Positions 15,830 through 43,417 are shown, counted from the whole stretch's first letter. The stretch is DNA of 60,778 bases, filler included, from Trichosphaerium sp. ATCC 40318 (GCA_038496445.1; 3 parts of 3 records of this genome joined end to end with filler, not necessarily neighbours in it), one strand, 5' to 3'. Numbers and translations are program-made. Notes: generated by a model not told the origin, from the letters alone.

Positions 15830-17525
15830 TTATCAGTTACACCTTCCGATACACTACCCTGTTACGAGTTACAGCAATCGCTGACATAGGTTTTATAGTC
15901 CTTTTTTTTATCTTTTCTACTTTTTAATTATCTTTTAAAGCAGGAGATTTACTCAACCGCTTTTAGCTTACGTTAAAAAGATAATTTAAATTTAAATTAT
16001 CTTTTTATTTCTGCCCTATTTAGTTTATTTTTCATAAAAAGTTGCTTTTCCTAAGAAAACTCTACTTTAAAATACAAACTTTTTTGATTTTTTTTTTGAT
16101 TAATTTAAACTACGTCCAGCCACCCAGCTTTCGCTGGGCCACGGCGGTATGTACGAGCGCAGGCAAGTATTCACGCGGTGTGATGATCCGCGATTACTAG
16201 CAATTCATCTTCATATTCCTATTTCAGGGAATATCCGAACAAGAGATTGTTTTATCAGACTAGCGCTAATCACTTATGAATAGCATCTTGTTGTACCAAC
16301 GTTGTATCACATTTGAAGCCAAACCATTAAGGCCATGACGACCAGTCGTCATCACTACTAACTATCATATTGCATGATTTGCTAAATTGTATTATTATTT
16401 TCACTCAATTTCATGGGTACGCCCGTTTATCCAGTAAGGCGACATATCACTACACGAGCTGACGGCGCCATGCAACACCTGGACCTAAAGTATTCTCTCA
16501 ATTTTTAATATAAATTTGAAAAAAACCTACTACTTATAAATATAACTTTATCTTGGGGCATATATCTAGGTTTGTAAGATTAAACGCGGATCATCAGATA
16601 ATCAACATGATCCACTGCTGGTAATACACTCCGCCAATTTCTTAGGTTTACATCTTGCGACATATTTCCCCAGGTGAGATATTTACGCGTAAGCTTCACC
16701 ACCGGTACAAGTCACAAAGGATTTAAAACCTCCTAGATGTCCAGCGCCAAATATCCATCGGTCACAGCGTAGATTACAAGGGTATCTAATCTTTTCACTC
16801 CCTACGCTTTCGATTACTAACGTCTATTCTTTCACAGTACGCGATTGCTCCGCATGATGGTCTTATAAATCTTAGAATTCTACTCCTAATTTATAATACC
16901 ACGTACTCAAAAAAATACAAAGACATAAGTTAAATGAGTTATCCTCAGATCAACCCGAGTTTTTTACTCAAAACTTTATGGACAGTTTACTTCCCTTTAC
17001 ACCAATCAAGATGAGTAGCACTTGGGCCCCCGTGTTACCGCGACTGCTGCACGAAGTTAGACAGCCTTTCCAATAATTACTATCACTATTATCATTATTT
17101 CACTGACTTTCGACTCTGCCTTCTTAAGCGAACAATCTTTCTACAACTGTGCTAAATTTAGCCACACGGCATAACTGGATCGTGCATTAAACTTGTCCAA
17201 AATCCCTCACTGCTGCGCCTTAACGTTCGGGTCATCTCTCCCCGCTGTGCCAGTTTACCCTCTCAGTCCTGGTACGGTCTTCGGCTAGGTAAGCTTTACC
17301 TTAAACCTACTACTTATCATTTACGATACATTCCTATGTGTCAAAAACTCGTATCTCTTTATATAAAAATTATAAATCTATTTACTTTATTAAGCTTATT
17401 TTGCTTAACATAGCTAGCTAATATCGATTAATACTCACCTTACGGGCATTCTAAATAATATAGAATATTACCTTGCATGTGTTAAGTCCACATTAGCACT
17501 CACTCAGCGCAAAATCATACGCTAA
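15830..17525 (-). rRNA. rns: Mitochondrial small-subunit rRNA
   Basis: Reverse complements of conserved SSU motifs: TACCCTGTTACGAGTT (15856), ACGAGCTGACGGCGCCATGCAACACCT, GGGTATCTAAT, TTACCGCGACTGCTGCAC (17035), CTTGCATGTGTTAAG (17472). Confidence 0.96.
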
Positions 17526-17560
17526 CTTTTACTTGTTTTTACACCAACTACCTTTAATAA

Positions 17561-17631
17561 CGAGCAAATCGGACTTGAACCGATATCTGAAAGGCCGACA
17601 ACTTCTATTTTACCTTTTAAACTATTGGCCC
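17561..17631 (-). tRNA. trnD: tRNA-Asp(GUC), needs 2 G insertions
   Basis: Anticodon loop TTGTCGG. Anticodon stem GAAG[G]/CCTTT and acceptor GGGCCAA/TTG[G]CTC+G pair fully only after G doubling. Confidence 0.9.
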
Positions 17632-17634
17632 TTT

Positions 17635-17704
17635 TTTGGATAGCAGACTCGAACCTGCACTTTTGGCTCCAAAGCCAACACTCTACCTTTTAAGTTATAC
17701 CCTG
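17635..17704 (-). tRNA. trnP: tRNA-Pro(UGG), cryptic
   Basis: CAGGGTATAACTT...; stem TTGGC/GCCAA with a 6-nt loop TTTGGA (7 nt after G doubling, giving G37); T arm GCAGG-TTCGAGT-C[C]TGC. Confidence 0.75.
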
Positions 17705-17710
17705 TTTTTT

Positions 17711-17783
17711 TTTTGGAGGCCGGACTCGAACCGATCTCCTCAAGGGTCATGAGCCTGCGAGCTAACCTATACTCCACTCCCGA
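17711..17783 (-). tRNA. trnM: tRNA-Met(CAU), probable initiator
   Basis: Loop CTCATGA; CAGG[G]/CCCTT gives the three G:C pairs diagnostic of initiator tRNA after one G insertion. Confidence 0.8.
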
Positions 17784-17785
17784 TT

Positions 17786-17865
17786 TTTCAGTGACGGGAC
17801 TTGAACCGCACGTTTTTTCAAACACAAATTTTGAATCTGACGTGTCTACATTCCACCACACTGAC
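17786..17865 (-). tRNA. trnL: tRNA-Leu(CAA)
   Basis: Long variable arm, loop TTCAAAA. D-loop AATG[G]TA and T stem GCG[G]G/CCCGT each lack a G. Confidence 0.88.
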
Positions 17866-17937
17866 TTTTTCAGGCCGGACTTGAACCGACATCAAAGATT
17901 TTGGAAACCTCTATTTTACCAATTAAACTACTGATAC
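17866..17937 (-). tRNA. trnW: tRNA-Trp(CCA)
   Basis: Stem GAGGT/ATCTT, loop TTCCAAA; T arm GTCGG-TTCAAGT-CCGGC. Confidence 0.88.
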
Positions 17938-17946
17938 CTTTTTAAC

Positions 17947-18018
17947 TTCGGGCGACAGGCATCGAACTGCAACCTTTGGGTTAAAAACCCACTGCTCTAC
18001 CTATTAAGCTACGCCCCC
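17947..18018 (-). tRNA. trnK: tRNA-Lys(UUU)
   Basis: GGGGGCGTAGCTTAATAGGTAGAGC; loop TTTTTAA; T stem GCAG[G]/CCTGT. Confidence 0.88.
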
Positions 18019-18021
18019 TCC

Positions 18022-18103
18022 CTAACGCGGTGGGATTCGAACCACGAAGAGAAAAACTCAATAAATTTACAATCTACTCCTTTAACCACTTGGATACACG
18101 TAC
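18022..18103 (-). tRNA. trnY: tRNA-Tyr(GUA)
   Basis: Loop TTGTAAA, long variable arm; T stem GTG[G]G/CCCAC. Confidence 0.88.
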
Positions 18104-18107
18104 TTTT

Positions 18108-18175
18108 GTTGGGTAGTTGATTCGAACCAACGTAACTTATTCAAAATCAAGCGCCTAACCTCTCGGCATACCCAT
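18108..18175 (-). tRNA. trnQ: tRNA-Gln(UUG), cryptic
   Basis: Loop TTTTGAA; anticodon stem CTTGA/T[C]AAG and T stem GTTGG/C[C]AAC each lack a C. Confidence 0.8.
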
Positions 18176-18245
18176 TTAGCCCAGTGGACTCGAACCCACA
18201 TCTTACAACTTATGAGTTGCTGTTTTTGCCTTTAAACTATAGTTC
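18176..18245 (-). tRNA. tRNA with CAU anticodon (elongator Met or lysidine-Ile), cryptic
   Basis: Stem GCAAC/GTTGT around a 6-nt loop TCATAA (7 nt after C doubling); T stem GTGGG/C[C]CAC. Confidence 0.75.
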
Positions 18246-18256
18246 TTTAAAAAAAA

Positions 18257-18326
18257 TATCCACGTTGGACTTGAACCAACATCGCCGAATTGAAAATACG
18301 TATCCTAACCTTTAGACGACGCAGAC
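18257..18326 (-). tRNA. trnE: tRNA-Glu(UUC)
   Basis: GTCTGCGTCGTCTAAAGGTTAGGA; loop TTTTCAA; acceptor pairs after C doubling (CCAAC[C]GTGGAT). Confidence 0.85.
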
Positions 18327-18328
18327 TT

Positions 18329-18400
18329 TGGCTCGTAACGGAATTGAACCGTTATTACACTATTTGCAATAGTATGGATTAACCGTTATCCTAACGAGCC
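18329..18400 (-). tRNA. trnC: tRNA-Cys(GCA), canonical as encoded
   Basis: Perfect cloverleaf: GGCTCGT/ACGAGCC, TACTA-TTGCAAA-TAGTG, AACGG-TTCAATT-CCGTT. Confidence 0.93.
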
Positions 18401-23299: not shown

Positions 23300-23792
23300 A
23301 TAAACTCGGCTTAAATTTTAAATTTCTAATAATTTTTCAAAAATATCATCTTTATCAATATTGCACTATCTACATAAAATAACGATAATAAAAAGACTAA
23401 ATAACACCAGTACTTTTAACAAATAGATTATTTACTTTATTTTTAATCTTAAACTAAATTCTTTAAAAATAAACATTTAACTTTTATTAAAGATACATAT
23501 CTACTGAAACACTTTTTAAAGTTCGCGATATTGTCACAATATCGCCAGTCCAATCGCGATTGGGCTGCTGCTCCTATAATTATGATGATACCTAATATAC
23601 ACCTACAGAAATATCCGTTACGACTGCAAAACCAAAGCAAGAACGTAGATTAAAACTCTAATAACTCTAAACTTATTAACATTTCTAATATACTTTGGAA
23701 GTTATTATAACCCCGATGATGTAAAAATACACAACAATAATCTAAAATTACCATTTTCTTTAATTTTTTATCTTCACATTTTTTCTACTCAT
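23300..23792 (-). CDS. rpl2: Ribosomal protein L2, N-terminal region (cryptogene, extent uncertain)
   Basis: HHRG...KYIRNVNKFR, LEF...RSC, NGYF...ILG and TGDIVTIS occur in L2 order. Confidence 0.45.
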
Positions 23793-24327
23793 TCATATCA
23801 AAATCAAACATGCGATAATCCTGTGTTAGCTCTACCGTTCATAAACTATACCTTTCCTTGATCATCATATCTCACTCATAATAACCTGTTAATGGAAAAT
23901 CCTTTCTTAAAGGAAACCTCTAAAAGTATAGTCTAATAAAATTCTACGCATATCTACATTCCCGAAAAGTATACGCCAAATAAATCTTGCGCTCTCTTTC
24001 TAACCACAAACCTGATCTAAAAATTTTACACGATGTAAATAAACTACCTCTTTTTTTATATGCAAAACCTTCTAATCTTATTCTACGATTTTAAATAAAC
24101 TTGAAAAAACGTAAGCTACCTTCAATTTACAGCAGCTGCACTATTATCTACACAAAAATATCTAACAATGATTTTCAGCATGCGCTCACTTAATTTTAAC
24201 CAAAAAAATAAAAACCACAAATCGCCATATCTTTACAAGATCCTATAAAAGTTCTTAAATATGTCCAAAAGATTTAATAAAAGACCTAAAATAAATTCAA
24301 AAGCAAAAACTCTCTAATTCAACGCAT
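23785..24327 (-). CDS. nad9: NADH dehydrogenase subunit 9 (cryptogene)
   Basis: Six single-base doublings give [78 protein letters not shown]. Confidence 0.93.
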
Positions 24328-24329
24328 AA

Positions 24330-25293
24330 TTAACCTAAAAAACTACCATATAAAATTACTTACCTCCCAAAGCTATTCACTATTAAACAATAAAACCCTA
24401 CCGTTATAGGTAACAAAGTTTTTCACCTAAACTCATTAAATGATCATATCTATATCTAGGTAATGAAGCTCTAACCAAATAAACATAAGCATTATTAATA
24501 AACTTTTAATATACAAAAAATAGGAATTCCTTCCACAAATCATTATAAAAAAAAATATTTCGCCAAGAAATAAATTGGCAAACAAAATACTTAATATAAT
24601 CATGTTTATATATCAGAAAGAAAAAAACAAACAAAACCCATGAAGAATATTCAACATTATAACAGACACTAATTCACCTTCTGCCTCTGGTAAATCTGCG
24701 AAAGGTGGCCTATTAGTCTCTGCTAATATTGTCACTATAAAAATTATTGCCGCTCAGGCGCATATAAAAATAAAATAGTATCTTTTGTAAATTAACTACA
24801 CTTATAAGATTTAACGTACCTGCTCAAGCACCAATATAATAATAACTAAACCAAAAGGAACTCATAAGAAATCATTTGGGCAGCAGCTCTTATTGCACTA
24901 AAAAAGCATATTTTGAGTTACTTGCCCAACCCGCAAAAATTAAACATAAACACCTAATGACGATATAACAAATATCAACATCAAACTATATCTATATCTA
25001 TGATTACATTTTAAAAGACAAAGGTAATAAGGATAAAAGAACTAAGATAAAAATAACAACCACAAGGAGCAAAAACAAATAAAATACCATAGCGTATTGA
25101 GGAATTATTGTTTCTTTTCAAATCATTTCAACCCATCAGCTATGGCTGTAATAAACCATATAAACCTACTACATAGGTCCTTTCCTTCTTTGATACCAGC
25201 CATAACTTTTCTTTCCATAAAGTTAATAATGCTCCGCAAAAATAAACGGAAACATTAAAATAATAAAATAATAAACTTTAAAATAACTAACAT
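24330..25293 (-). CDS. nad1: NADH dehydrogenase subunit 1 (cryptogene)
   Basis: [72 protein letters not shown], all in successively shifted frames. Confidence 0.94.
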
Positions 25294-25503
25294 TATTTTA
25301 TTAATATATTTAAAATTACTAAAAAACAAAAAAAATAAAATAAAGAACTTAATTTATTTTTAATTTCGCTTCTTCCCTTGAAACTATAAAAAATTATAAA
25401 CAAATAACTATCTTTTTTAAATATTCATTTATAATACAAATAACATTCTTTTTTTTCAAAATTTACACACTTTTCTTATTTTTTTACTTAAACTATAAGT
25501 AGT

Positions 25504-26574
25504 TTAAGTAAAAAAATAAGAAAAAAATTCATATATATTTCCCAGCATGTTGGTTATAAAATAATAAAAATCAACGCCTTTTTCATAAAATCATTCGCTT
25601 CATCTGTTTTCTATTTCTTTATCTAATATTGATAATTTTTTTTTTATTGCCTCTTTTATTATTGATCTAGACTTAACAATCCCTCATAATATATCTTGCA
25701 GTAATCCATATTTTTCTAAAAGCTTTGCCCATAAATCACGTCGGGCCTCTAATAGCGATGCATTATTCTCCACAAATCTATGCATTTGATCCTTAAAATA
25801 CTTGGACAGTTTTCCTACATCTGTAGCTTGCCAGTCAAAAACTTCTATCAAATCATATAAATTTTTTTTTATTGCTCTTAAATTTTCTAAATCTAAGGTT
25901 TTTATGTTTTCTTTAGTATTAAAATAAGCAAATAATTCTTCTAATTTCAATTTCAGACTATTTATACAGACGTCTATATAACACACTACATTTTTTTTAG
26001 ATAATGCTGAAACACTGTTTTCTAAATAAATTTTTAAATTTTCACTGTTATACAATTCTCACTCTTTTATTCAATCAAAAATTTTTTCTAATCCTTCTAT
26101 ATTTTCTCCTTCTATATTTTCTCCTTCTATTTTTTCTAATCCTTCTATATTTTCTCCTTCTATATTTTCTCCTTCTATTTTTTCTAATCCTTCTATATTT
26201 TCTCCTTCTATTTTTTCTCCTTCTATTTTTTCTAATCCTTCTATATTTTCTCCTTCTATTTTTTCTCCTTCTATTTTTTCTACTCCTTCTATTTTTTCTT
26301 CTTCTATTTTTTCTCCTTCTATTTTTTCTACTCCTTCTATTTTTTCTTCTTCTATTTTTTCTTCTCCTTCTATTTTTTCTCCTTCTATTTTTTCTTCTTC
26401 TTTCTTTTCTCCTTCTATATTTTTTTCTCCTTCTTCTGATGCTGATCTTCTATTTACTACCACCATCACGCCTACTATTACTCCTATAATACAAGTGGCT
26501 GCAAAACCAAAACCTATGTCTACATACCCAATACCTCCCACAGCTAACGCCATAGGATCCATTCCTCATAACAT
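25504..26574 (-). CDS. Unassigned 356-aa mitochondrial ORF, uninterrupted in code 4: N-terminal TM segment plus acidic (IEGEK/IEGLEK) repeat
   Basis: With TGA=Trp, the track ORFs 26071-26562 and 25684-26055 join in frame from ATG 26574 (MLWGMDPMALAVGG...) to TAA 25504-25506. No frameshift is needed. Confidence 0.8.
26080..26440 (-). repeat. Coding minisatellite of 15/18-bp units (ATAGAAGGAGAAAAA, ATAGAAGGATTAGAAAAA)
   Basis: About 20 degenerate tandem units encoding IEGEK/IEGEN/IEGLEK/IEGVEK. Confidence 0.92.
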
Positions 26575-26679: not shown

Positions 26680-26961
26680 ATTATAACTAATAATTAATGT
26701 AAAAAAAAAAACCCTAAACCTACAAAATCAAATATTTATAAATATCACACTTTCCACAATATTTCTCTTTTATTTATATTTTGAACCCAACATTATAAAT
26801 ACCAAAAGAACCTATTCACTCTAATATACTTTTTCCATTAAATTAAAACTATATTTATAAGAAAACAAATAAAAAACTATACCTATACTTGCTCCTCCTA
26901 CACCGACAGTACATACTCCTGCTGCTAATACTTTTGCTGCTAATACTATTTGTCATTCCAT
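26680..26961 (-). other. Chimeric atp9(5')::nad5(3') reading frame
   Basis: 26961 to about 26878 encodes MEWQIVLAAKVLAAGVCTVGVGGASIGI, near-identical to atp9 at 36082. It continues directly into VFYLFSYKYSFNLMEK[G]ILEWIGSFGI, which resembles the Nad5 C-terminal motif Y..SF..LDKG.IE.LGP.GI. Confidence 0.7.
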
Positions 26962-26989
26962 TTTTTTTTTACTCTTTTTTAAAATTTAT

Positions 26990-29063
26990 ACTATTACTAT
27001 ACTGTTTCTACCTGTTGCCGCAAATATTTTGACGATTTAACATATTCATTGTTATCTTAAAGTAATTACAAATAAAAAAACTTACGATAACAATCAGTTT
27101 AAAAACACTTTATTATACTTCTTTTCATAATTACTTTTTTATAAAACTATTTTTCCCCAACAAAAAAAACATTACCTAGGAAAAATACAATAATAATTTA
27201 CTGTTGGTATATTGCTCAAAATACTATACTTTTTATGAAAATATACATATTAATAATATGTATATTTTCATAAAAAGTATAGTATTTTGAGCAATATACC
27301 AACAGTAAATTATTGAAAAATAAAATAGAAATTACATTTTTTTCAACTCAAAAGACGCATTACCTTGTAACTTTTTGTAAAACATTTTCTATATTAGAAT
27401 ATCAACATCTTTTTCCGTATAGACCAATCTGGCACCGCTACATCTACTCACGCCCTAAATTTTTACGTAAATTATAATTTAGATGAATAAATTTACTTAA
27501 TCTATATTTAATAAATTTATTCTGTTTATTCTCCTTGCCCAAAAAACAAATTCAAATTATGCTTTGAATTTGTTTTTTTTTTACACCTTTTTTTGCAAGC
27601 CTAATAACCCTAAAAAACTAAAATTAACCTTGAAATATCTTGACTTATAAAATTCCTAAATTATTCTTACTTTCTCATTTTATATTTAAATTTAAACTTT
27701 TGTTGTATAATACCACACTTCTTTTAAATTAGTATACCTTCCCATCTACTAAACATATTTTGATTTTTTTCAGCGAACCTTTCTTTACAATTAGCCCTAC
27801 ACCAAAGCTAAATATAATAATTCTTTATAGTACAGCCTATATTATTACACCTAAGTATATAGACTTTACACCTAACCAACAGTAAAATATTTCATTAGTT
27901 TTTCAAATCAAACTTTCTTAATCAGTAACCTAATAAAGGCAATTCTAAACGAATATCAGAAAACATATAAAAAAGCAATCAAACAAAGCAATTTCGAAAT
28001 CAATTCACAAATAAAATACCATATTTGTTATAATTTACACAATACAATCTGTTATTACACTCCTATATTATTCATAAAATTTCTAATGCTATTTACACTT
28101 TAATATCAAAACTACTCTTATACTAAAATGTAAAATTTAACGATTTGTATAGTCATAACCATCATGAGATTAAATAAGATCAACTTACGCTTATATGAGT
28201 TGATCTTATTTTTCTCTATTTTCTTGTCAAAAAACCTAAATCTACATCCCCATAACCGTTTAAAATAAAAACTGTAAACGCAAATCTTGCTTTATTAGTT
28301 AATCATTCTATATTAAAAATTCATTTAACTTGCTTTAGTTCGAACTATATATATAAAAATTACATCATTGTTAAATTTCCTCTAACACATCATTAACATC
28401 TAAAGTATCCTGAACAACTGCTCCCATTTTCTAGACGCAAACTCAAAAGGCTTCAAGGTAAATGCTCTACAGGACATACTGCTATAAAATTTGTTGTTAA
28501 TTCTCCGTAATTATTTTTTCTCTATACGTACTAATTCTAAAAACATGCCACGACCTAAAAAACTAAACCAAAACTACCAAATACTTCTAAGCTAAACAAA
28601 ACACACTAGCACACTGAATACACTTGTCATATATGTGCTTGTTAATTCTCAACAAAAAAACCTAATACTGACCTTTTTTTTTTTTCATGTATCTTCCTCT
28701 ATCATCCCAAAAATAAAAGAAATATCTTGTAAATCACAACACCCGCCTGATCACAAATTGGACAATCCAACGGATGATTACATAGTAAATATTCCATTAC
28801 ATTTTCTCTAGCAATCTCTATCTTAAAGATATTTTCTTATAACTAAACCTGATACTAGAGGTACACTACATGCTATTTCTAATTAGACGTTCTAGTTGTC
28901 TCTATTAAACATAATCTGCAGTTCCCAATATTCCTAATTTTTCAAAATAACATAATCTTGGTAAATTTAAATTAATACATCTAAACCTTGGATTGCTGTT
29001 CGCCACTCGGTACCAAAATTACTCGATTAATCGCTTTATACCTACCATTTCTGATTCTCACAT
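26990..29063 (-). CDS. nad11: NADH dehydrogenase subunit 11, full length (cryptogene)
   Basis: [77 protein letters not shown]; C-terminal DVAVPG.VYTEKD..YSNIE and NYFKDN...KSSK. Confidence 0.92.
27192..27314. repeat. Perfect 123-bp hairpin inside the nad11 coding region
   Basis: AATAATTTACTGTTGGTATATTGCTC...CATATTA-A-TAATATG...GAGCAATATACCAACAGTAAATTATT. Confidence 0.93.
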
Positions 29064-29126
29064 TTTGGGGTGTTTTTTTTTACTTTTTTTTATATTTTAA
29101 TTAAACAGGGGGAAAAGAAGGGAGAT

Positions 29127-29226
29127 AACTTTGATTTTTTTTAAAAAGATTAATTGAATATCTTTTAGAAATAACCAAATTTTTCTAAAAGATATTCAAT
29201 TAATCTTTTTAAAAAAAATCAAAGTT
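29127..29226. terminator. Hairpin overlapping the stop codon of the 468-aa ORF (mirror copy about 43255-43354); possible processing or terminator structure
   Basis: AACTTTGATTTTTTTTAAAAAGATTAATTGAATATCTTTTAGAAA...TTTCTAAAAGATATTCAATTAATCTTTTTAAAAAAAATCAAAGTT. The function is inference. Confidence 0.45.
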
Positions 29227-30571
29227 TTTTAAAAAGTCAAGTAAAAAATACATAATGTCAATTAACAAATTTATCAAAATTTACAGGAGACAAACTTATT
29301 CATAAAATAGGAAGTATAAAAAAAGTCTCCCCAAAGCTTGCAAAAGTTACTAATTTGTCAAGAACAATTAAATCTAAAAAAGAATATAAAGTTTCTATAA
29401 AAACGAACTCTCTTTCTTTTTCAAGCATGCTTATAATTTTATCTTTTCAAATTTCATTTATACTATCTATTATAGTATATCAATCCATTCATCAAACAAG
29501 TTCATCCTTTTTAATATCTCTTCATAAATTTTCGTAATAGTTACGTAAATTCTCTTCATAATTTTTAGAAAAATTTAAAACAGCATCATGAATGTTTTCA
29601 CTGTAACTACTCTCTAAATCTGCTAATTCTTCACCTTTCTTTTTTTTTTTTATAAATTCTTTTCATTTAGGATAATCTTGCACAATACTTAAATCAACGT
29701 TATGTTTAACACAAGTATTTGTTAAATAATTAAAAAAAATATCTAGCTGATTTTCAAAATATTTAGTAGTTTGTTCAATTAAATTTTCTTTATCTATTTC
29801 CATTGCTTTTTTTTTTTCTAACATTATTTTTTTTAATTCTACTATTAAATTTACATTTTTTTCACTTATATCATAATTTTCAATTATAAATTCTACTCAG
29901 CTTAAATTCTCAAACATAACTGACAAATTACTTTCTTCTATTATTATTCCTTCGTTTTCTAAAGTATAAGTTACAAAATTAAAAAAATCAGCATCTTGAC
30001 TTTGCTCAATTTCACCTATATGATCTACTATTTTTTTTTTTATAAACTCTTTATCATTTTGCATAAATAGAATAAAATTATTTATTTCTTCTAAATTAAG
30101 CATAGAATTAATAAAAAAATGATAATAAATAGAACACATAACTAATCATAAGATCATAGAAGCAAACGCACTATAGCTTCAAGTTAAACTATATCCTTGG
30201 CTAGCTAGTTGCGTATATAGATCTGCTACCACTGTTGGATCTATAGGTACTAAATTGTCTAACTTATCCACTATTTCTTCTCTGCTTTTTTCTTCATTAA
30301 AGAACGTTAAGGTTAAGCCTCCCCCCTCGAAGCTTAACCATTCAAAAAAATGAACCCTCCCTTTCGCTAATAAAGCATAATTATTTATCAAATCTTCTTT
30401 AAAAAAAGGATTATTATAAAATACTAATTCTTTACTAAATAAAAAATAAAATTTAAAAACACTTATAAAACACCCCGCCATGTAATGTATTGAATTCAAT
30501 ACAAACCAAAGAACCAAAAATGATAGGAGCTCACTTTTTACATATTTCTTTAATATTACAAAATTAAACAT
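29165..30571 (-). CDS. Unassigned 468-aa mitochondrial ORF, uninterrupted in code 4 (copy 1)
   Basis: With TGA=Trp, track ORFs 30179-30610 and 29897-30139 join and continue to TAA 29165-29167: 1407 nt from ATG 30571 with no frameshift. Confidence 0.8.
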
Positions 30572-30748
30572 GATAATTTTTCTTCTTTTTTTATATTTTA
30601 AACTTAACAATACCTATATAAATTACTCTATTACACTACACAAAATACACTGCATATATACTTTAAATATATTTATTTTTCTTCTTTTTCTTTTTCTTTT
30701 TTTTTCTTAAACGTCTTTTAGTTATTCTTTTATTTTTTATTTTACCAT

Positions 30749-31135
30749 TTATAATTTCATCTGAAATTTTGGTTCCAAATTCTTTTGTCTTCACAATTTA
30801 AAAGATTTTGATGTTTTACCATAGTCTTACTTCGTTGACATTTACAGGTAAACCACTTAGTAACTTTAACCTCTATTACTATAAGATCTGTATATCTTCT
30901 TATATATTTTTTAATTCTCACATAACCTTTCACCTAAATAATAATTAGAAAAAAGATAATACTTTAAAATCATCCCTTTCCTAAAATTCCAATTGCTCAA
31001 ATTTTCGCAAGGCGATATACCTAAGTTAAAACATATTCTACTACCCTTCGTCTACAAAGCCCCCTAACGCAGATAAATTTACTGAAATTGCTCCTTACTT
31101 TTTAATATTACACCAACTAAAATAAAATTTTTCAT
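30749..31135 (-). CDS. rps13: Ribosomal protein S13 (cryptogene, copy 1)
   Basis: MKNFILVGVILKSK..ISVNLSALGGF...ICFNLGISP...NRG.KLLSGLPVNGQRSKTNGKTSK after single insertions. Confidence 0.85.
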
Positions 31136-31879
31136 AACTTAATCATAATAAAGTAATCCTTTTTTCCTTCTCTTCACGTACTTTTCCTATTTTTAGTTCA
31201 TTAAAATTTGTGGATGCACAATCCTATTTTCCTATATATATGAACTTTTTATAAAGCAAAAAATATGCGCAAAATTATTTAGTATATAAGATATATACTA
31301 AAACATATTATAATTTTCTATAATAAACTTTTATATAAATTAAATCATACTAAAAAGATATAAAAAATGACCTAAAAATAAATTTATCTACGTAATTTCT
31401 TATATGTTTAAAAACACGCACTCTAAAACTAAACCTTTTAAATAAAATTTAAAATAAAAACTTTATAAGATCATAAAAACGAAAGAAAAAGACGCTAATA
31501 AAATTTAAAAAAACTAAATAATCAAAGAAGAGTAGCGTAGAGATTTTCTATCTATTTTCACTATACAAATTTTTTTAACTTCAACTATCTATGACTACAA
31601 AACCATTTAAAAAAACCTCTTATACTTTCTAGATAAATATAACATTAAATTAATATTAGCACCAAATAATGAGTAGATACACCATCAATCCTTTTCTTAC
31701 ATAATTCAAAGGTATACTTGCACACTCAAAATTCCTGTATTTGGATTTAACACGAAAAAATAAAAACAGTTAAAGACTAATACACCATTTAAACTTCTAA
31801 CTTTATCCTCACCAAAATTATAATTATCTTTAAAAATAAGATCTCTCTTTTGTTAAAAAGTAATCTTCAACTAAATCTC

Positions 31880-33337
31880 ATAGGCATCTTCATAAGAGTA
31901 TACAATATAAAATATAAAAACTCTCCTATAGACATAAAATATAACATAAAATAAATAAAAATAAACACAGATAGTAAATAACGCCCAACAGAACATCAAA
32001 AATTTAAAGCAACATAAGCATCTGGATAATCACTATCCTTCTGGGCATACCCGCCATCCTAACAAATGCATTGGCAAAAAAGTCATATTTACTCCTATAA
32101 AATTTCCCAAAATTGTAATCTTCCTATAAAATCGGATATTTTTTTCCAAACATTAAAGAACTTCAATGATAAAACCCGCAAAAATTCCAAACACAGAACT
32201 AAAGATAAAACATAATGAAAATGAGCAACACATAATATGTATCATGCAATGCTATATCTAAAACACGTTTGCTAAAATAATACCAGTTACACTCCAAAAC
32301 TAAACATTAGTACAAATCTGCAGCATAAAATAGCGGAACTCTTCATTCTACTATACAAACATTATTGTTGATAACAACCAAAAACTTTAACCCTGAAGGC
32401 ATTGCTATTATCATAGTTACTGTCATAAAATATACCTCGTATCATCATCTAAACCCGCTGTAAACATATGATGACTCATACAATAGATCCTAAAACTGCT
32501 ATACATACCATGCATAAACCATAGAATCATGACATAAACCTCTTTATAAGTTCAACAGAAATTACTACACTAGTTATACAAAAGCTGGTAATATTAATAT
32601 ATAAACTTCTGATGTCCAAAAAATCAAAAAATATGTGATATAAAACAGGATCTCCACCTCCTGTGGATCAAAAAATGTTGTATTAAAATACGATCTGTTA
32701 TTAACATAACTAAAGCTCCTCTAAAACAGGTAATGTCAATAATAATAATACCGCTGTTATATAAATGATACTGCAAACAACCAATTCTATAAGTATCCAT
32801 AATCGCATATTCATTATAGTTACCATAAAATTTATTGCACCGATATTGATGAAATTCCGGCTATATGCAACTCAAAATACAAGCATCTATGACATTCCAG
32901 GACTAGCCTTAATACAGAAAGTAATGGATATAAAGTTCATCCTGCTCTGCACCATCTCCTATAACAAAGATCACATTAATAATAATAAAGAAGGCGCAAT
33001 AATCAGAAACCTAAATTATTTACTCTTGGGAATGCATCTCCGGGGCCCCTAAACTTAATGAACTATAAAATTACCTAAACCCCTATTAATAAAGGCATAA
33101 CGAAAAAAAAAATCATTAATAGACATGCGCTGTTACGATTACATTATAAACTTGTTATCTTGAACCAAAATTAACGGACAGGCATTCCTAATTCTATACG
33201 TATTATCATGATAATATAGTTCCCATACTCCTCCAAAAAAACTTGCTCATATATATAGCATCCTATATCTTTATGATTTGTTGAACATGACCACTCTTAA
33301 TGTAACATAAATATTGATAAAAACTTAATAAATACAT
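31880..33337 (-). CDS. cox1: Cytochrome c oxidase subunit 1 (cryptogene, copy 1; 3' end approximate)
   Basis: KRWSCSTNHKDIG, YNVIVTAHG, GAPEMAFPRVNN, GAGAGWTLYP, FFDPTGGGDPVLY.HIFWFFGHPEVYILILP, HDTYYVVAHFHYVLSLG and GMPRR after repeated single-base insertions. Confidence 0.96.
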
Positions 33338-33489
33338 TATTTTTAATTTATAATATACTTTTTATTTATTAAAAATCTTTTTTTTCTCTACTTTTATTAA
33401 AAACTTAATTAATGGAATCTAGTCAAAAAACTACCTTATATATATTTTTTTTACAGTTGTAAAAAAAATATATATAACATTATTTTACA

Positions 33490-35950
33490 ATATTTTTTTT
33501 ACTACCATATTTAATCCTGATATTGAATCATAAATATAAATTAAAATTAGCAGATTCTACTTATATGTTATCAGCAGTTCCTTTTTCGCACGTAGCTTTA
33601 ACGCCAACCGGAACGTAAAACCGATAACGCTACCACAAGCGGTGCACCCTATTACCATAACGCCTCTCTCGTACTGCATTGGGCTCTAATTTTAATTTTT
33701 ATCACAGCAGATAGGGGCAAACTGTCTCACGACGTTCTAAACCAGCTCACGTACCTCTTTAAACGACGAACAGTCGTACCCTTGGGAGCCTACTCCCCCA
33801 GGATGAGATGAGCCGACATCGAGGTGCCAAACCGCTCGCAGATAAGAACTCTCAAAGGCAATAAGCTGTTATCCCTGGCGTACTTTTATCCGTTTGCGGA
33901 TGCCCTACCTGTAAGCGCATCCGGAAAACTATGACGACTTTAAATCCCTGTTAACCCTTTCAAGCTTACAGTCAGCTAAAATAAAAACCATATGCACTAC
34001 GGAACTTTAACGTCCTGAATTAGCCTTTGTACACTCCGTTACCTTTTAGGGAGCTTCGCCCCAGACAAACTATCCACCATGCATTTTTAATTTCTACTAA
34101 GATTAGATTTTTCCAACAAAAAATCAATATCCACTGACGGCTCCTTAAATGACCTAAACCATTAAATCATACCTCTTGATTATACTGTGTTTTTGCTTTC
34201 CTTAACCCATACAAGGTTTTAGTAAAGTGCACAGGGTCTTCCGTCCCGCTGCAATTTTTTCGCATCTTCACGAAAACTTCAATTCACTAAAATAACACTT
34301 GAGACAGTAGAAGAGTCGTTACGCTTCATGCAGGACTACAATTAATAGCTAGGAATTTCGCTACCTTAAGACGTCAAGGATTACGGCCGCGTTTACTGCT
34401 GCTTATATTCATTGCTTTTAAACAAATCCTTTTCACGATACAGCACGGGCAGGCATCGAACCTATACTTCATATACTATTTAGCAGGGTCCTGTGTTTTA
34501 GTAAACAGTCGCTCTTCTCTGTTCCGCTTCCCCCAAAATACTTCTTAAAAATAAATTATTTTCACTTTTAATTTATTTTAAAAAACAATATTTTAGGTAC
34601 CTATCTCCCGAAGTTACTGAGTTATTTTGCGAGTTCCTTAAGCATTATTCTTCTATTACTTATTGTTCTACAACTAATTACCTGTGTCGGTTATTGGTAC
34701 GTTTTTTTTTTTTATTTTTTTCTTGTAAGTTACAAAAAAATTGATATTTTACGATTACAATAACTATTTTTTGTAATTAAATTTCTATAAAATTGCTCTG
34801 AATATAACTAATATAACCTTAGTCGGAATCTTACAAACACATTCCCTTAAGGACCGCTAACCCTTATCTGTTTAACATAGATAAGGAAACCTTAATCTTT
34901 CGTAATAATGTTTTTACATATAAAGCTACTCATGCAACATTTATACTATTGATATTTTAACCAAACTCACGTACAGTTTTTTACATACAATACATCTGCT
35001 ACCAAATTAATTCTATAGCTTCGCAAATAATTTAGAGCCCCTTACATCATGACGCTTAAAAAACAATACGTGAGCTTTTACGCATCTTTAAAGAATGGCT
35101 GCTTCTAGCCCATCTCCGCTTTTATTACGTCTTTCCAGTTGATTATTATTTAAGGGCTTAGCTTATAGTCTGGGCTTTTTCCCTCTCGACTAGAATCTTC
35201 GCACCTAAGTCTTTCTATACTTTTTTATTTTTATAACATCTTGGTTTCACTATACCCGTAAATAACTTAGTTACTCCGGAATAATATTAGTGCCATACTC
35301 TACAAAATCAAAATACGCTTGCTTAAACAAGTTTCGCAGAAAACCAGCTATCACCAAGTTTGATTAGCTTTCACTCCTAACCAACACTCATCGAGCCTCT
35401 TGCAACAGACACCGGTTCAGCCAAAAACTTGGTGTTGTTAGATCACTTGGTTTCGGTCATATTTTTTAGACTTTACAGATTTACTCTTTGCTTTCACTAC
35501 GCCTCCCTTAAAGTTAAGCTTGCTCAAAAATATACTCATTGGCCCATTATACAAAAGTACGCTGTCATATCTTTTTTATACTCCAACCGTTAAAGTATTA
35601 AGTTCATTTCTTTTCAACTATCCCTACGATATCTTTTTCAACTTCCTTCACAGTACTTTTACACTATCGGTTATAAAAAAATTCTTACTTTAGCAGCAGG
35701 CACTGCCTATTCGATTTTCTCTACTTAAAAGAACTCAACGCATTTGTCACCATACTAACGTTTCTACACGATGTTTTTTTTATAGGTACTGAGATGTTTC
35801 ACTTCCCTATTTTTATTTTTCTATTTTAAAAATTTAAAAAGATACCTAAAAATCATAGCATTGTACTACTCAATTAAGTTTTCGCTTTATTAAAGCGTCT
35901 TTTTTTTGATACCTAGTAATCCCTTAATACTTAATATATAATAAAAGTAA
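33490..35950 (-). rRNA. rnl: Mitochondrial large-subunit rRNA (copy 1, ends approximate)
   Basis: Reverse complements of GGAAGTGAAACATCTCAGTACC, GGTAGCGAAATTCCT, GGGATAACAG and GCACCTCGATGTCGGCTC. Confidence 0.95.
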
Positions 35951-36081
35951 AAACTCTAATAGAAAACTTTTACTTTTTTTTACTCTTTAAATTAATTAAA
36001 AAATTTAAAGATTTAAATAAAAAAAAAAAATAAAATCCCCTATACTAACAGATTTTTTTATATAGAAAAAAAAAAAAAAAA

Positions 36082-36356
36082 ATGGAAATGACAAATAGAT
36101 TATTAGCAGCAAAAGTTTAGCAGCAGGAGTATGTACTGTCGGTGTGGAGGAGCAAGTATAGGTATAGGTAAAGTTTTTGGAGGTTTATTAATAGCAGTAT
36201 CTAGAAATCCTGAATTAGAAGCTAATTTATTAGAACAGCACTTTTAGGTTTTGCTTTATCTGAGGCGATGGGTTTATTAGTTTTATGATGTCTTTTTTAA
36301 TTATGTATACTAGTAAAAAAGACATCATTAAAAGGATAGTTTATTTTTTATATTAG
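36082..36356 (+). CDS. atp9: ATP synthase subunit c, single copy in the centre of the inverted repeat (frameshifted; local read quality doubtful)
   Basis: LLAAKVLAAGVCTVGVGGASIGIGKVFGGLLIAVSRNPELEANL.RTALLGFALSEAMGLL..MMSFLIMYT, with the RNP loop and catalytic Glu. Confidence 0.92.
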
Positions 36357-36529
36357 TAGAATATCGCATATATTCTTTGTAGTTTGTTTTTTTTTTTTTT
36401 TTTTTTCTATATAAAAAACATCTGTTAGTATAGGGGATTTTATTTTTTTTTTTTATTTAAATCTTTAAATTTTTTTATTAATTTAAAGAGTAAAAAAAAG
36501 TAAAAGTTTTCTATTAGAGTTTTTACTTT

Positions 36530-38990
36530 TATTATATATTAAGTATTAAGGGGATTACTAGGTATCAAGAAAAAAGACGCTTTAATAAAGCGAAAACTTT
36601 AATTGAGTAGTACAATGCTATGATTTTTAGGTATCTTTTTAAATTTTTAAAATAGAAAAATAAAAATAGGGAAGTGAAACATCTCAGTACCTATAAAAAA
36701 AACATCGTGTAGAAACGTTAGTAGTGGTGACAAATGCGTTGAGTTCTTTTAAGTAGAAAATCGAATAGGCAGTGCTGCTGCTAAAGTAAGAATTTTTTGA
36801 TAACCGATAGTGTAAAAGTACTGTGAAGGAAGTTGAAAAAGATATCGTAGGGATAGTTGAAAAGAAATGAACTTATACTTTAACGGTTGGAGTATAAAAA
36901 AGATATGACAGCGTACTTTTGTATAATGGGCCAATGAGTATATTTTTGAGCAAGCTTAACTTTAAGGGAGGCGTAGTGAAAGCAAAGAGTAAATCTGTAA
37001 AGTCTAAAAAATATGACCGAAACCAAGTGATCTAACAACACCAAGTTTTTGGCTGAACCGGTGTCTGTTGCAAGAGGCTCGATGAGTGTTGGTTAGGAGT
37101 GAAAGCTAATCAAACTTGGTGATAGCTGGTTTTCTGCGAAACTTGTTTAAGCAAGCGTATTTTGATTTTGTAGAGTATGGCACTAATATTATTCCGGAGT
37201 AACTAAGTTATTTACGGGTATAGTGAAACCAAGATGTTATAAAAATAAAAAAGTATAGAAAGACTTAGGTGCGAAGATTCTAGTCGAGAGGGAAAAAGCC
37301 CAGACTATAAGCTAAGCCCTTAAATAATAATCAACTGGAAAGACGTAATAAAAGCGGAGATGGGCTAGAAGCAGCCATTCTTTAAAGATGCGTAAAAGCT
37401 CACGTATTGTTTTTTAAGCGTCATGATGTAAGGGGCTCTAAATTATTTGCGAAGCTATAGAATTAATTTGGTAGCAGATGTATTGTATGTAAAAAACTGT
37501 ACGTGAGTTTGGTTAAAATATCAATAGTATAAATGTTGCATGAGTAGCTTTATATGTAAAAACATTATTACGAAAGATTAAGGTTTCCTTATCTATGTTA
37601 AACAGATAAGGGTTAGCGGTCCTTAAGGGAATGTGTTTGTAAGATTCCGACTAAGGTTATATTAGTTATATTCAGAGCAATTTTATAGAAATTTAATTAC
37701 AAAAAATAGTTATTGTAATCGTAAAATATCAATTTTTTTGTAACTTACAAGAAAAAAATAAAAAAAAAAAAAAACGTACCAATAACCGACACAGGTAATT
37801 AGTTGTAGAACAATAAGTAATAGAAGAATAATGCTTAAGGAACTCGCAAAATAACTCAGTAACTTCGGGAGATAGGTACCTAAAATATTGTTTTTTAAAA
37901 TAAATTAAAAGTGAAAATAATTTATTTTTAAGAAGTATTTTGGGGGAAGCGGAACAGAGAAGAGCGACTGTTTACTAAAACACAGGACCCTGCTAAATAG
38001 TATATGAAGTATAGGTTCGATGCCTGCCCGTGCTGTATCGTGAAAAGGATTTGTTTAAAAGCAATGAATATAAGCAGCAGTAAACGCGGCCGTAATCCTT
38101 GACGTCTTAAGGTAGCGAAATTCCTAGCTATTAATTGTAGTCCTGCATGAAGCGTAACGACTCTTCTACTGTCTCAAGTGTTATTTTAGTGAATTGAAGT
38201 TTTCGTGAAGATGCGAAAAAATTGCAGCGGGACGGAAGACCCTGTGCACTTTACTAAAACCTTGTATGGGTTAAGGAAAGCAAAAACACAGTATAATCAA
38301 GAGGTATGATTTAATGGTTTAGGTCATTTAAGGAGCCGTCAGTGGATATTGATTTTTTGTTGGAAAAATCTAATCTTAGTAGAAATTAAAAATGCATGGT
38401 GGATAGTTTGTCTGGGGCGAAGCTCCCTAAAAGGTAACGGAGTGTACAAAGGCTAATTCAGGACGTTAAAGTTCCGTAGTGCATATGGTTTTTATTTTAG
38501 CTGACTGTAAGCTTGAAAGGGTTAACAGGGATTTAAAGTCGTCATAGTTTTCCGGATGCGCTTACAGGTAGGGCATCCGCAAACGGATAAAAGTACGCCA
38601 GGGATAACAGCTTATTGCCTTTGAGAGTTCTTATCTGCGAGCGGTTTGGCACCTCGATGTCGGCTCATCTCATCCTGGGGGAGTAGGCTCCCAAGGGTAC
38701 GACTGTTCGTCGTTTAAAGAGGTACGTGAGCTGGTTTAGAACGTCGTGAGACAGTTTGCCCCTATCTGCTGTGATAAAAATTAAAATTAGAGCCCAATGC
38801 AGTACGAGAGAGGCGTTATGGTAATAGGGTGCACCGCTTGTGGTAGCGTTATCGGTTTTACGTTCCGGTTGGCGTTAAAGCTACGTGCGAAAAAGGAACT
38901 GCTGATAACATATAAGTAGAATCTGCTAATTTTAATTTATATTTATGATTCAATATCAGGATTAAATATGGTAGTAAAAAAAATATTGTA
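36530..38990 (+). rRNA. rnl: Mitochondrial large-subunit rRNA (copy 2, ends approximate)
   Basis: GGGAAGTGAAACATCTCAGTACC (36669), GATAGCTGGTT, AAGGTAGCGAAATTCCT, CAGGGATAACAG, TTTGGCACCTCGATGTCGGCTC, GAACGTCGTGAGACAGTT. Confidence 0.95.
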
Positions 38991-39138
38991 AAATAATGTT
39001 ATATATATTTTTTTTACAACTGTAAAAAAAATATATATAAGGTAGTTTTTTGACTAGATTCCATTAATTAAGTTTTTAATAAAAGTAGAGAAAAAAAAGA
39101 TTTTTAATAAATAAAAAGTATATTATAAATTAAAAATA

Positions 39139-40600
39139 ATGTATTTATTAAGTTTTTATCAATATTTATGTTACATTAAGAGTGGTCATGTTCAACAAAT
39201 CATAAAGATATAGGATGATGTATATATATGAGCAAGTTTTTTTGGAGGAGTATGGGAACTATATTATCATGATAATACGTATAGAATTAGGAATGCCTGT
39301 CCGTTAATTTTGGTTCAAGATAACAAGTTTATAATGTAATCGTAACAGCGCATGTCTATTAATGATTTTTTTTTTTCGTTATGCCTTTATTAATAGGGGT
39401 TTAGGTAATTTTATAGTTCATTAAGTTTAGGGGCCCCGGAGATGCATTCCCAAGAGTAAATAATTTAGGTTTCTGATTATTGCGCCTTCTTTATTATTAT
39501 TAATGTGATCTTTGTTATAGGAGATGGTGCAGAGCAGGATGAACTTTATATCCATTACTTTCTGTATTAAGGCTAGTCCTGGAATGTCATAGATGCTTGT
39601 ATTTTGAGTTGCATATAGCCGGAATTTCATCAATATCGGTGCAATAAATTTTATGGTAACTATAATGAATATGCGATTATGGATACTTATAGAATTGGTT
39701 GTTTGCAGTATCATTTATATAACAGCGGTATTATTATTATTGACATTACCTGTTTTAGAGGAGCTTTAGTTATGTTAATAACAGATCGTATTTTAATACA
39801 ACATTTTTTGATCCACAGGAGGTGGAGATCCTGTTTTATATCACATATTTTTTGATTTTTTGGACATCAGAAGTTTATATATTAATATTACCAGCTTTTG
39901 TATAACTAGTGTAGTAATTTCTGTTGAACTTATAAAGAGGTTTATGTCATGATTCTATGGTTTATGCATGGTATGTATAGCAGTTTTAGGATCTATTGTA
40001 TGAGTCATCATATGTTTACAGCGGGTTTAGATGATGATACGAGGTATATTTTATGACAGTAACTATGATAATAGCAATGCCTTCAGGGTTAAAGTTTTTG
40101 GTTGTTATCAACAATAATGTTTGTATAGTAGAATGAAGAGTTCCGCTATTTTATGCTGCAGATTTGTACTAATGTTTAGTTTTGGAGTGTAACTGGTATT
40201 ATTTTAGCAAACGTGTTTTAGATATAGCATTGCATGATACATATTATGTGTTGCTCATTTTCATTATGTTTTATCTTTAGTTCTGTGTTTGGAATTTTTG
40301 CGGGTTTTATCATTGAAGTTCTTTAATGTTTGGAAAAAAATATCCGATTTTATAGGAAGATTACAATTTTGGGAAATTTTATAGGAGTAAATATGACTTT
40401 TTTGCCAATGCATTTGTTAGGATGGCGGGTATGCCCAGAAGGATAGTGATTATCCAGATGCTTATGTTGCTTTAAATTTTTGATGTTCTGTTGGGCGTTA
40501 TTTACTATCTGTGTTTATTTTTATTTATTTTATGTTATATTTTATGTCTATAGGAGAGTTTTTATATTTTATATTGTATACTCTTATGAAGATGCCTATG
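39139..40600 (+). CDS. cox1: Cytochrome c oxidase subunit 1 (cryptogene, copy 2; 3' end approximate)
   Basis: ATG 39139 MYLLSFYQYLCYIK-AG[G]-TGG gives the conserved RW.STNHKDIG; same motifs as copy 1. Confidence 0.96.
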
Positions 40601-41344
40601 AGATTTAGTTGAAGATTACTTTTTAACAAAAGAGAGATCTTATTTTTAAAGATAATTATAATTTTGGTGAGGATAAAGTTAGAAGTTTAAATGGTGTATT
40701 AGTCTTTAACTGTTTTTATTTTTTCGTGTTAAATCCAAATACAGGAATTTTGAGTGTGCAAGTATACCTTTGAATTATGTAAGAAAAGGATTGATGGTGT
40801 ATCTACTCATTATTTGGTGCTAATATTAATTTAATGTTATATTTATCTAGAAAGTATAATAAGGTTTTTTTAAATGGTTTTGTAGTCATAGATAGTTGAA
40901 GTTAAAAAAATTTGTATAGTGAAAATAGATAGAAAATCTCTACGCTACTCTTCTTTGATTATTTAGTTTTTTTAAATTTTATTAGCGTCTTTTTCTTTCG
41001 TTTTTATGATCTTATAAAGTTTTTATTTTAAATTTTATTTAAAAGGTTTAGTTTTAGAGTGCGTGTTTTTAAACATATAAGAAATTACGTAGATAAATTT
41101 ATTTTTAGGTCATTTTTTATATCTTTTTAGTATGATTTAATTTATATAAAAGTTTATTATAGAAAATTATAATATGTTTTAGTATATATCTTATATACTA
41201 AATAATTTTGCGCATATTTTTTGCTTTATAAAAAGTTCATATATATAGGAAAATAGGATTGTGCATCCACAAATTTTAATGAACTAAAAATAGGAAAAGT
41301 ACGTGAAGAGAAGGAAAAAAGGATTACTTTATTATGATTAAGTT

Positions 41345-41731
41345 ATGAAAAATTTTATTTTAGTTGGTGTAATATTAAAAAGTAAGGAGCAATTTCAGTA
41401 AATTTATCTGCGTTAGGGGGCTTTGTAGACGAAGGGTAGTAGAATATGTTTTAACTTAGGTATATCGCCTTGCGAAAATTTGAGCAATTGGAATTTTAGG
41501 AAAGGGATGATTTTAAAGTATTATCTTTTTTCTAATTATTATTTAGGTGAAAGGTTATGTGAGAATTAAAAAATATATAAGAAGATATACAGATCTTATA
41601 GTAATAGAGGTTAAAGTTACTAAGTGGTTTACCTGTAAATGTCAACGAAGTAAGACTATGGTAAAACATCAAAATCTTTTAAATTGTGAAGACAAAAGAA
41701 TTTGGAACCAAAATTTCAGATGAAATTATAA
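41345..41731 (+). CDS. rps13: Ribosomal protein S13 (cryptogene, copy 2)
   Basis: GGT TTA CCT GTA AAT G[G]T CAA CGA AGT AAG ACT A[A]T GGT AAA = GLPVNGQRSKTNGK. Confidence 0.85.
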
Positions 41732-41909
41732 ATGGTAAAATAAAAAATAAAAGAATAACTAAAAGACGTTTAAGAAAAAAAAAAGAAAAAGAAAAAGAAG
41801 AAAAATAAATATATTTAAAGTATATATGCAGTGTATTTTGTGTAGTGTAATAGAGTAATTTATATAGGTATTGTTAAGTTTAAAATATAAAAAAAGAAGA
41901 AAAATTATC

Positions 41910-43316: not shown

Positions 43317-43417
43317 AAGATATTCAATTAATCTTTTTAAAAAAAATCAAAGTTATCTCCCTTCTTTTCCCCCTGTTTAATTAAAATATAAAAAAAAGTA
43401 AAAAAAAACACCCCAAA

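Follow-up and report, generated by a model that had tools for sequence, protein, structure and literature searches.

Introduction

RNA editing in which the inserted nucleotide duplicates its encoded neighbour has been described for the heterolobosean amoeba BB2 (Pharyngomonada) by Yang, Harding, Kamikawa, Simpson and Roger (2017, Genome Biol Evol 9:1161; PMC5421314). These authors counted 475 insertions, all of one nucleotide (G 84%, A 7%, C 5% and U 3%) and each a copy of the encoded base beside it; mRNAs, both rRNAs and 12 of 25 tRNAs were affected. They detected neither a motif nor a guide RNA, saw the unedited form in only 0.33% of reads, and proposed a transcriptional 'stutter' (PMC5421314). 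The doubling rule and the stutter idea are thus not new, both being in print for BB2 (PMC5421314). Among the kinds of RNA editing, template-doubling insertion is the one least understood, and the literature that we searched, the coverage of which is incomplete, reports it from this single organism, with no second one found. Paradinid editing was considered as a second case and rejected, as it is substitutional.

Other systems share some of these features. Physarum and Didymium have dense single-nucleotide insertions in all mitochondrial RNA classes, with no guide RNAs known; Physarum editing is co-transcriptional (summarized in PMC5421314) and adds mainly C and some dinucleotides, only some of which match a neighbour. 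In paramyxovirus P genes, the transcribing polymerase adds a variable number of G residues beside encoded G, at one slippery A(n)G(n) tract. In kinetoplastids, mitochondrial mRNA frames are restored post-transcriptionally by guide RNAs, through the insertion and deletion of U only, and many partly edited molecules are present.

The window analysed here (the whole stretch of DNA, 60,778 nucleotides) contains part of a protist mitochondrial genome, and its editing is a real case of this known but very rare kind, in a much more heavily edited genome that appears not to have been described before. It resembles that of Physarum and Didymium in its dense single-nucleotide insertions across RNA classes and its lack of known guide RNAs, but G and A dominate and all the readable insertions match a neighbour, a difference from Physarum that the first-pass annotation had anticipated. 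Like the paramyxovirus genes, it has extra G residues beside encoded G, but at hundreds of sites with exactly one letter added at each. It shares with kinetoplastids the restoration of mitochondrial frames by added nucleotides, but none of the other kinetoplastid features was seen: the readable inserted bases are G, A and C, and within the mitochondrial piece no match across an edited site exceeds 13 nt.

Gene content and organization

The mitochondrial piece (15571-44704) is AT-rich (about 27% G+C) and has a G-rich sense strand, which switches from minus to plus near 36200. It carries a large inverted repeat with 307 nt between the arms (Table 1). The protein genes are shattered across frames, and their pieces match solved structures (cox1, nad1, nad11, atp9 and, weakly, nad9). 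Letters are missing from protein and rRNA genes, and probably from tRNA genes, at about one per 30-45 nt. The gene that we take to be rps13 was named from the likeness of its edited reading to uS13, no tool having matched it. An intact ORF of 163 aa is present on the minus strand at 26074-26565, and begins with hydrophobic residues; Glu, Lys, Ile and Gly make up a long tandem repeat in it (units such as EKIEGE), and its antisense frame is likewise open, for 161 aa.

Table 1. Positions in the window of genes, repeat arms, RNA contigs and RNA-shown insertions, with the frame corrections for intervals of cox1
Feature	Position	Strand	Remarks
SSU rRNA gene	16107-17530	-	at least 9 one-letter gaps at conserved positions, 3' half
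tRNA cluster, about 12 genes	17560-18400	-	ARAGORN recognizes only 4
nad9 3' part, 'WLERE' to stop codon	23785-24010	-	NuoC/NDUFS3 chains, best E 0.085; six +1 breaks
nad1	24407-25300	-	split over many frames; ND1 chains, E 5e-6; boundaries approximate
Inverted repeat, left arm	27776-36082		all genes minus: nad11 5' part, URFs, rps13, cox1, LSU rRNA
atp9	36082-36330	+	in 307-nt repeat centre; subunit c, E 7e-4; needs about 4 one-letter insertions
Inverted repeat, right arm	36390-44704		same genes as left arm, on plus; cut off by piece end
LSU rRNA gene	36527-38981	+	twin 33495-35946 on minus
cox1	39139-40860	+	twin about 31620-33340 on minus; COX1 chains, E 0.006; start and end approximate
Probable rps13	41300-41725	+	edited reading 'PVNGQRSKTNGKT'
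Unidentified ORFs, lightly edited	41820-43234	+	4 indels in 1415 nt of X6 contig (record 24)
nad11 5' part	43500-44704	+	75-kDa subunit chains, E 5e-9 for 43645-43776; start approximate; continues past piece end
X7 record 25 (LSU)	37800-38610		811 nt; 22 gaps
X6 record 22	39849-40275		441 letters on 427 nt; +14
X20 record 15	39881-40760		909 letters on 880 nt; +29
X6 record 23	40250-41765		1566 letters on 1516 nt; +50
RNA-shown insertions, LSU rRNA	37816 +G, 37846 +G, 38640 +G, 38732 +G, 38191 +A, 38235 +A, 38248 +C	+	
RNA-shown insertion, cox1	40252 +G	+	among the insertions listed
RNA-shown insertions, rps13	41489 +G, 41641 +G, 41690 +G, 41506 +A, 41657 +A	+	
cox1 interval	39155-39399	+	+1 corrections needed 7; RNA surplus 7
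cox1 interval	39571-39865	+	+1 corrections needed 13; RNA surplus 10
cox1 interval	39849-40275	+	+1 corrections needed 14; RNA surplus 14
cox1 interval	39881-40760	+	+1 corrections needed 24; RNA surplus 29

Searches with unedited sequence yielded little. Pfam gave no match for ten fragments of the cox1 region, because their in-frame stretches are only about 9-17 aa long, and phmmer gave none for a 53-aa cox1 fragment against the full protein library. Exact look-ups of three window ORFs and a homology search with a 143-aa window ORF were also negative. Neither JGI metagenome contigs nor GTDB genomes contained the exact DNA words of cox1 and LSU rRNA, in which the edit sites were left optional, and IMG/VR likewise lacked the exact cox1 word.

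RNA contigs with one-letter insertions

Contigs from four public runs were compared with positions 37800-43799 of the window. X20 is a recorded RNA library, and X6 and X7 are probable RNA. Contigs from these three runs displayed zero substitutions in cox1 and LSU rRNA and had gained a single letter at many places, about 51 of these in cox1 and 22 within 811 nt of LSU rRNA; within the 6 kb compared, the changes in these two genes were mononucleotide insertions only, without deletions. The number of surplus letters equalled the number of gaps in three of the five cox1 contigs, which hence contain no dinucleotide insertions, and the other two fell three letters short and were read as the left-arm variant of the repeat. 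X6 and X7 had 6-10 substitutions in intergenic parts and in the unidentified ORFs (40860-40913, 41988-43119) but none in cox1 or LSU rRNA, and they were therefore attributed to a second strain of the same species. This strain turns up in several studies, under differing organism labels.

The added letters occur in the RNA, restore the genes and obey a doubling rule. Editing was thus seen directly in mRNA and rRNA, and it is probable in tRNA, in keeping with the first-pass annotation. The frame breaks themselves, and nothing further, could suggest that ribosomes shift frame at each break and that the RNA is unchanged; however, the extra letters are present in RNA contigs and the rRNA and tRNA genes also miss letters, so that recoding during translation has a negligible probability.

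The fourth run, X1, contains an unedited contig of 2444 nt at a depth of 731, alongside edited contigs, and both forms are represented by contigs at 41140-41356. This run therefore appears to combine DNA with RNA, and the window was probably derived from it. These contigs bear on the reading in which the assembly dropped the missing letters by error, through undercalling of short runs, and the contigs taken for RNA represent the true DNA. The DNA side of the comparison consists of the window and X1, which holds both forms, and the two arms of the inverted repeat differ by 18 small indels and five mismatches, with 8 of the indels no more than 500 nt from the centre. At 39218-39220, X1 and the RNA contigs agree with the left arm, and at 40860 X1, X6 and X7 do so; a three-letter deficit in two contigs suggests that the runs also follow the left arm at 39366. 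Six of the 18 arm indels (36419 C, 36569 G, 36724 G, 35722 AG, 39218 AT and 44684 C) reflect neither homopolymers nor doubling and weigh against the doubling rule; one of them, the G at 36724, is required by the conserved rRNA consensus. It is possible that the indels near the palindrome centre are assembly noise, or that edited and unedited reads were mixed there. However, the unedited X1 contig was assembled independently, and both arms are identical over 1514 nt of cox1, with the same approximately 50 breaks in each. Most of the sites are, moreover, single bases rather than long homopolymers, and X20 contains only 7% of the 31-letter words of the window, a loss that dense editing predicts. 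We therefore consider an assembly artefact to be very improbable.

Identity of the inserted base

The first-pass annotation had proposed that nearly every break could be mended by repeating a neighbouring encoded base. The identity of the insertions was read from 12 of the 142 indel rows, which were those listed, and from two eight-letter loose ends. All 13 insertions readable in this way duplicate the encoded base next to them (8 G, 4 A and 1 C). Eleven of the 12 listed rows adjoin an identical base, with a probability of 2.4e-5 that all 11 would do so, given their identities, and the loose ends supplied the G insertions at 37846 and 41641. The twelfth row, +C at 38737, falls within a part of LSU that is ultra-conserved and reaches a depth of tens of thousands, because contigs from other organisms pile up there. 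The universal LSU sequence GGAAAGACC..GCACCUUUACU is regained through the insertions at 38235 and 38248, and the A doubling suggested earlier for rps13 (ACT A[A]T) corresponds to the insertion seen in RNA at 41657. The observation of base-doubling insertions is thus confirmed, its first interpretation is partly supported, and we hold the doubling rule itself with high confidence.

At the 34 sites with coordinates, a small and partly inferred sample, the inserted bases were G at 20 (about 59%), A at 9 (about 26%), C at 3 (about 9%) and U at 2 (about 6%), in the order G > A > C > U. The template run was a single nucleotide at 24 of these sites, two nucleotides at nine and four at one. No flanking motif was found at the 34 sites, a weak T at +1 (17 of 34) being the sole hint. 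The DNA shows no depletion of GG (rho about 1), and editing is therefore site-specific, as had been proposed.

Editing of the Physarum type, with mostly C, some dinucleotides and inserted bases that bear no relation to their neighbours, would account for the similar density (about 1 in 25-30 nt) and for the editing of all RNA classes. However, every readable insertion adjoins an identical base, the single C stands against 12 purines, and three of the five cox1 contigs lack dinucleotide insertions; this type of editing is highly improbable here.

Restoration of cox1

A frameshift-aware dynamic programme was used to align cox1 with a profile of seven bacterial CtaD/CyoB proteins. The scores were 659 with doubling only, 592 with non-neighbour bases only, 643 with G only and 706 with any base. 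Among the 24 rules in which the inserted base is a fixed permutation of its neighbour, doubling ranked 11th under the standard code and 13th with UGA read as Trp, 12 of the 23 alternative rules outscoring it in the latter case. We therefore rejected cox1 DNA combined with protein homology as evidence for doubling. The amino acid constrains the inserted base only weakly, so that the earlier list of repairable breaks, taken as evidence from DNA, was suggestive rather than evidential: any +1 break can be mended by some nearby base, and the repairs did not exceed chance. The evidence for the rule comes from the RNA.

In each cox1 interval, the RNA surplus roughly matches the +1 corrections that the alignment with UGA as Trp requires (Table 1), and the insertions restore cox1. 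The shortfall in the last interval is due to the alignment stopping at 40533, before 40760.

UGA seems to be read as Trp. In the cox1 motif FWFFGHPEVY, TGA stands for the conserved Trp (39853-39855), with the RNA unchanged there, and the score of the cox1 alignment rose from 706 to 770 with translation table 4. The nad7 gene of a contig from the same organism (L011, see below) has TGA at two conserved Trp positions. The sole tRNA-Trp seen (17866-17937) has the anticodon CCA.

Predicted sites in nad9, rRNA and tRNA genes

In the three-frame view, the minus strand at 23785-24010 has six +1 frame breaks, exactly where the first-pass annotation had placed them. Doublings at 23992 (G), 23961 (G), 23912 (C), 23875 (G), 23851 (G) and 23837 (C) would produce a single open frame, WLERE..EPVEL, with NuoC/Nad9 motifs, ending at TAG (23785-23787). 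Two of these predicted sites need C, for conserved prolines, and one needs G, for the usual valine; three are free at the protein level. The gene sequence thus predicts that base doubling mends all six breaks.

Covariance-model alignments of LSU rRNA and of the 3' half of SSU rRNA, with variable-region gaps left out, revealed 27 further one-letter gaps at conserved positions, and in all 27 the consensus base is the neighbour of the gap. In the tRNA cluster, several genes are one letter short in the T arm, the anticodon loop or a stem. Three T arms, GGUUCGA(G/A)UC-, need C, and one arm, CAG-UUCG, needs G; doubling of G or C would return GGUUCGA..UCC to the T arms. Two anticodon loops have six letters. 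SSU rRNA and tRNA are therefore probably edited, judging from the gaps in their genes. The trnQ stem U[C]AAG (18108-18175), previously listed as an exception to doubling, does lack a letter, but it is equally readable as a U doubling, which would give a G.U pair.

Copies of atp9 and related genomes

There are two copies of atp9 in the piece, the full gene in the centre of the repeat (Table 1) and a truncated 5' duplicate at 26820-26958 (minus strand) that is fused to unrelated sequence. Contig L011 (JGI sample 3300016894) is from the same organism as the window and carries nad7 (136-1329) followed by atp9 (1398-1725). It is 100% identical to the truncated copy over 26877-26970 (94 nt) and then follows the central atp9, with one substitution and four one-letter insertions, three of them doublings and the fourth an A between C and T. 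The 5' part of L011 cannot derive from the central atp9, and its template is therefore probably a third locus outside the piece; alternatively, the copies may have recombined. The extra A is a non-doubling insertion relative to the central atp9 and as such speaks against the rule. However, with another locus as the probable template, we regard it as unexplained rather than as a counter-example.

A search with atp9 identified a cluster of relatives in ENA, JGI and Logan assemblies, including Tara Oceans metagenomes (L008-L015), with atp9 DNA 78-88% identical to that of the window. At two of the four breaks in the central atp9, these relatives encode GGG or TTT where the window has GG or TT, and edit sites therefore differ between close relatives; at the other two, doubling results in a synonymous codon. 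In this comparison of genes, the edit sites look like one-base losses from short runs. Gene callers use TGA as Trp in L008-L015, the upstream ORFs of which have no Pfam match. One relative, L014, has the same atp9 protein under the standard table, presumably with TGG where the others have TGA.

Mechanism

The best explanation for these observations is template-doubling insertion, most likely made by the re-use of one template base in transcription, and to this reading as a whole we assign a probability of roughly 80%. The mitochondrial transcription complex would use one template base twice at specified positions and then move on, so that the insertion would be templated and made during transcription. 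The polymerase, or a factor attached to it, would fail to advance the template once at marked positions. The added base is always the templated neighbour, and a templated step is therefore far likelier than free addition. For the timing taken separately, we lean only somewhat towards a co-transcriptional mechanism; the timing, the enzyme and the choice of sites are what we infer from this pattern.

The term stuttering in the first-pass annotation, understood as homopolymer slippage, does not fit these sites. Classical slippage requires a homopolymer as long as the RNA-DNA hybrid. At 24 of the 34 sites a single template base is present, and one letter is added at each, making classical homopolymer slippage unlikely.

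The alternative is a separate machine that cuts or extends the finished RNA and adds a copy of the neighbour, directed by proteins or small RNAs. The choice of sites without a motif could reflect such trans-acting specificity factors. A search on both strands of the 29-kb piece for guide-like matches spanning an edited site found none longer than 13 nt, which is the chance level and agrees with the earlier statement that no guide is apparent; this search covered only these 29 kb of one genome. However, a guide-based system has no reason to copy only the neighbouring base, and there were no unedited contigs at edited sites in the three RNA-type runs (X6, X7 and X20), bearing in mind that contigs drop rare variants. 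Edited-only contigs fit editing during or right after transcription, although contigs cannot reveal rare molecules. In BB2, only 0.33% of reads were unedited (PMC5421314). We consider post-transcriptional insertion to be unlikely, and we retain the re-use of a template base in transcription as the preferred reading.

Comparison with BB2

The editing described here is of the same kind as that of BB2. In both organisms, single nucleotides are inserted as copies of an adjacent base and all four bases are used, with G leading (here in the small and partly inferred sample of 34 sites); mRNA, rRNA and, probably here as well, tRNA are affected, with T-arm GUUC motifs restored; and there are no substitutions, flanking motifs or homopolymer tracts. 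Edited forms dominate the RNA of BB2, and here the RNA-type runs contained edited contigs only, from which rare variants would drop out. Both genomes also have a large inverted repeat.

However, editing is 3-5 times denser here. There is about one site per 30 nt in cox1, whereas BB2 has 475 in a genome of 119 kb (about 70 kb with the repeat counted once). The 22 sites in 811 nt of LSU rRNA equal the number in the whole BB2 LSU, and cox1 alone has about 51, against about 8 per protein gene in BB2. A accounts for 26% of the 34 sites here, but for 7% overall and none of 40 rRNA sites in BB2. The repeat arms are 307 nt apart here and opposite each other in BB2, and the SSU gene measures about 1.42 kb, whereas the edited SSU rRNA of BB2 has 1,654 nt. 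BB2 was grown in a rich peptone-serum medium, whereas this organism and its relatives were found in marine (Tara) and wastewater data. The genome analysed here is therefore not that of BB2, and its editing may have arisen independently.

We tentatively suggest, as a possibility that we would not put at even odds, that the sequences come from an undescribed, widely distributed marine protist lineage with the densest known template-doubling editing (about 1 in 30 nt, all four bases and all RNA classes). In practice, genomes edited in this way look like damaged sequence or poor assemblies and are mis-annotated by gene callers. A second, far more heavily edited genome offers several times more sites per kb in which to search for determinants, and public metagenomes contain less-edited relatives through which the origin of the sites can be approached. 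If the proposed lineage is real, its relatives in Tara and other ENA data, which still encode some of the doubled bases, would allow the gain and loss of sites to be traced, and their comparison may reveal the site determinants and the polymerase or factor responsible.
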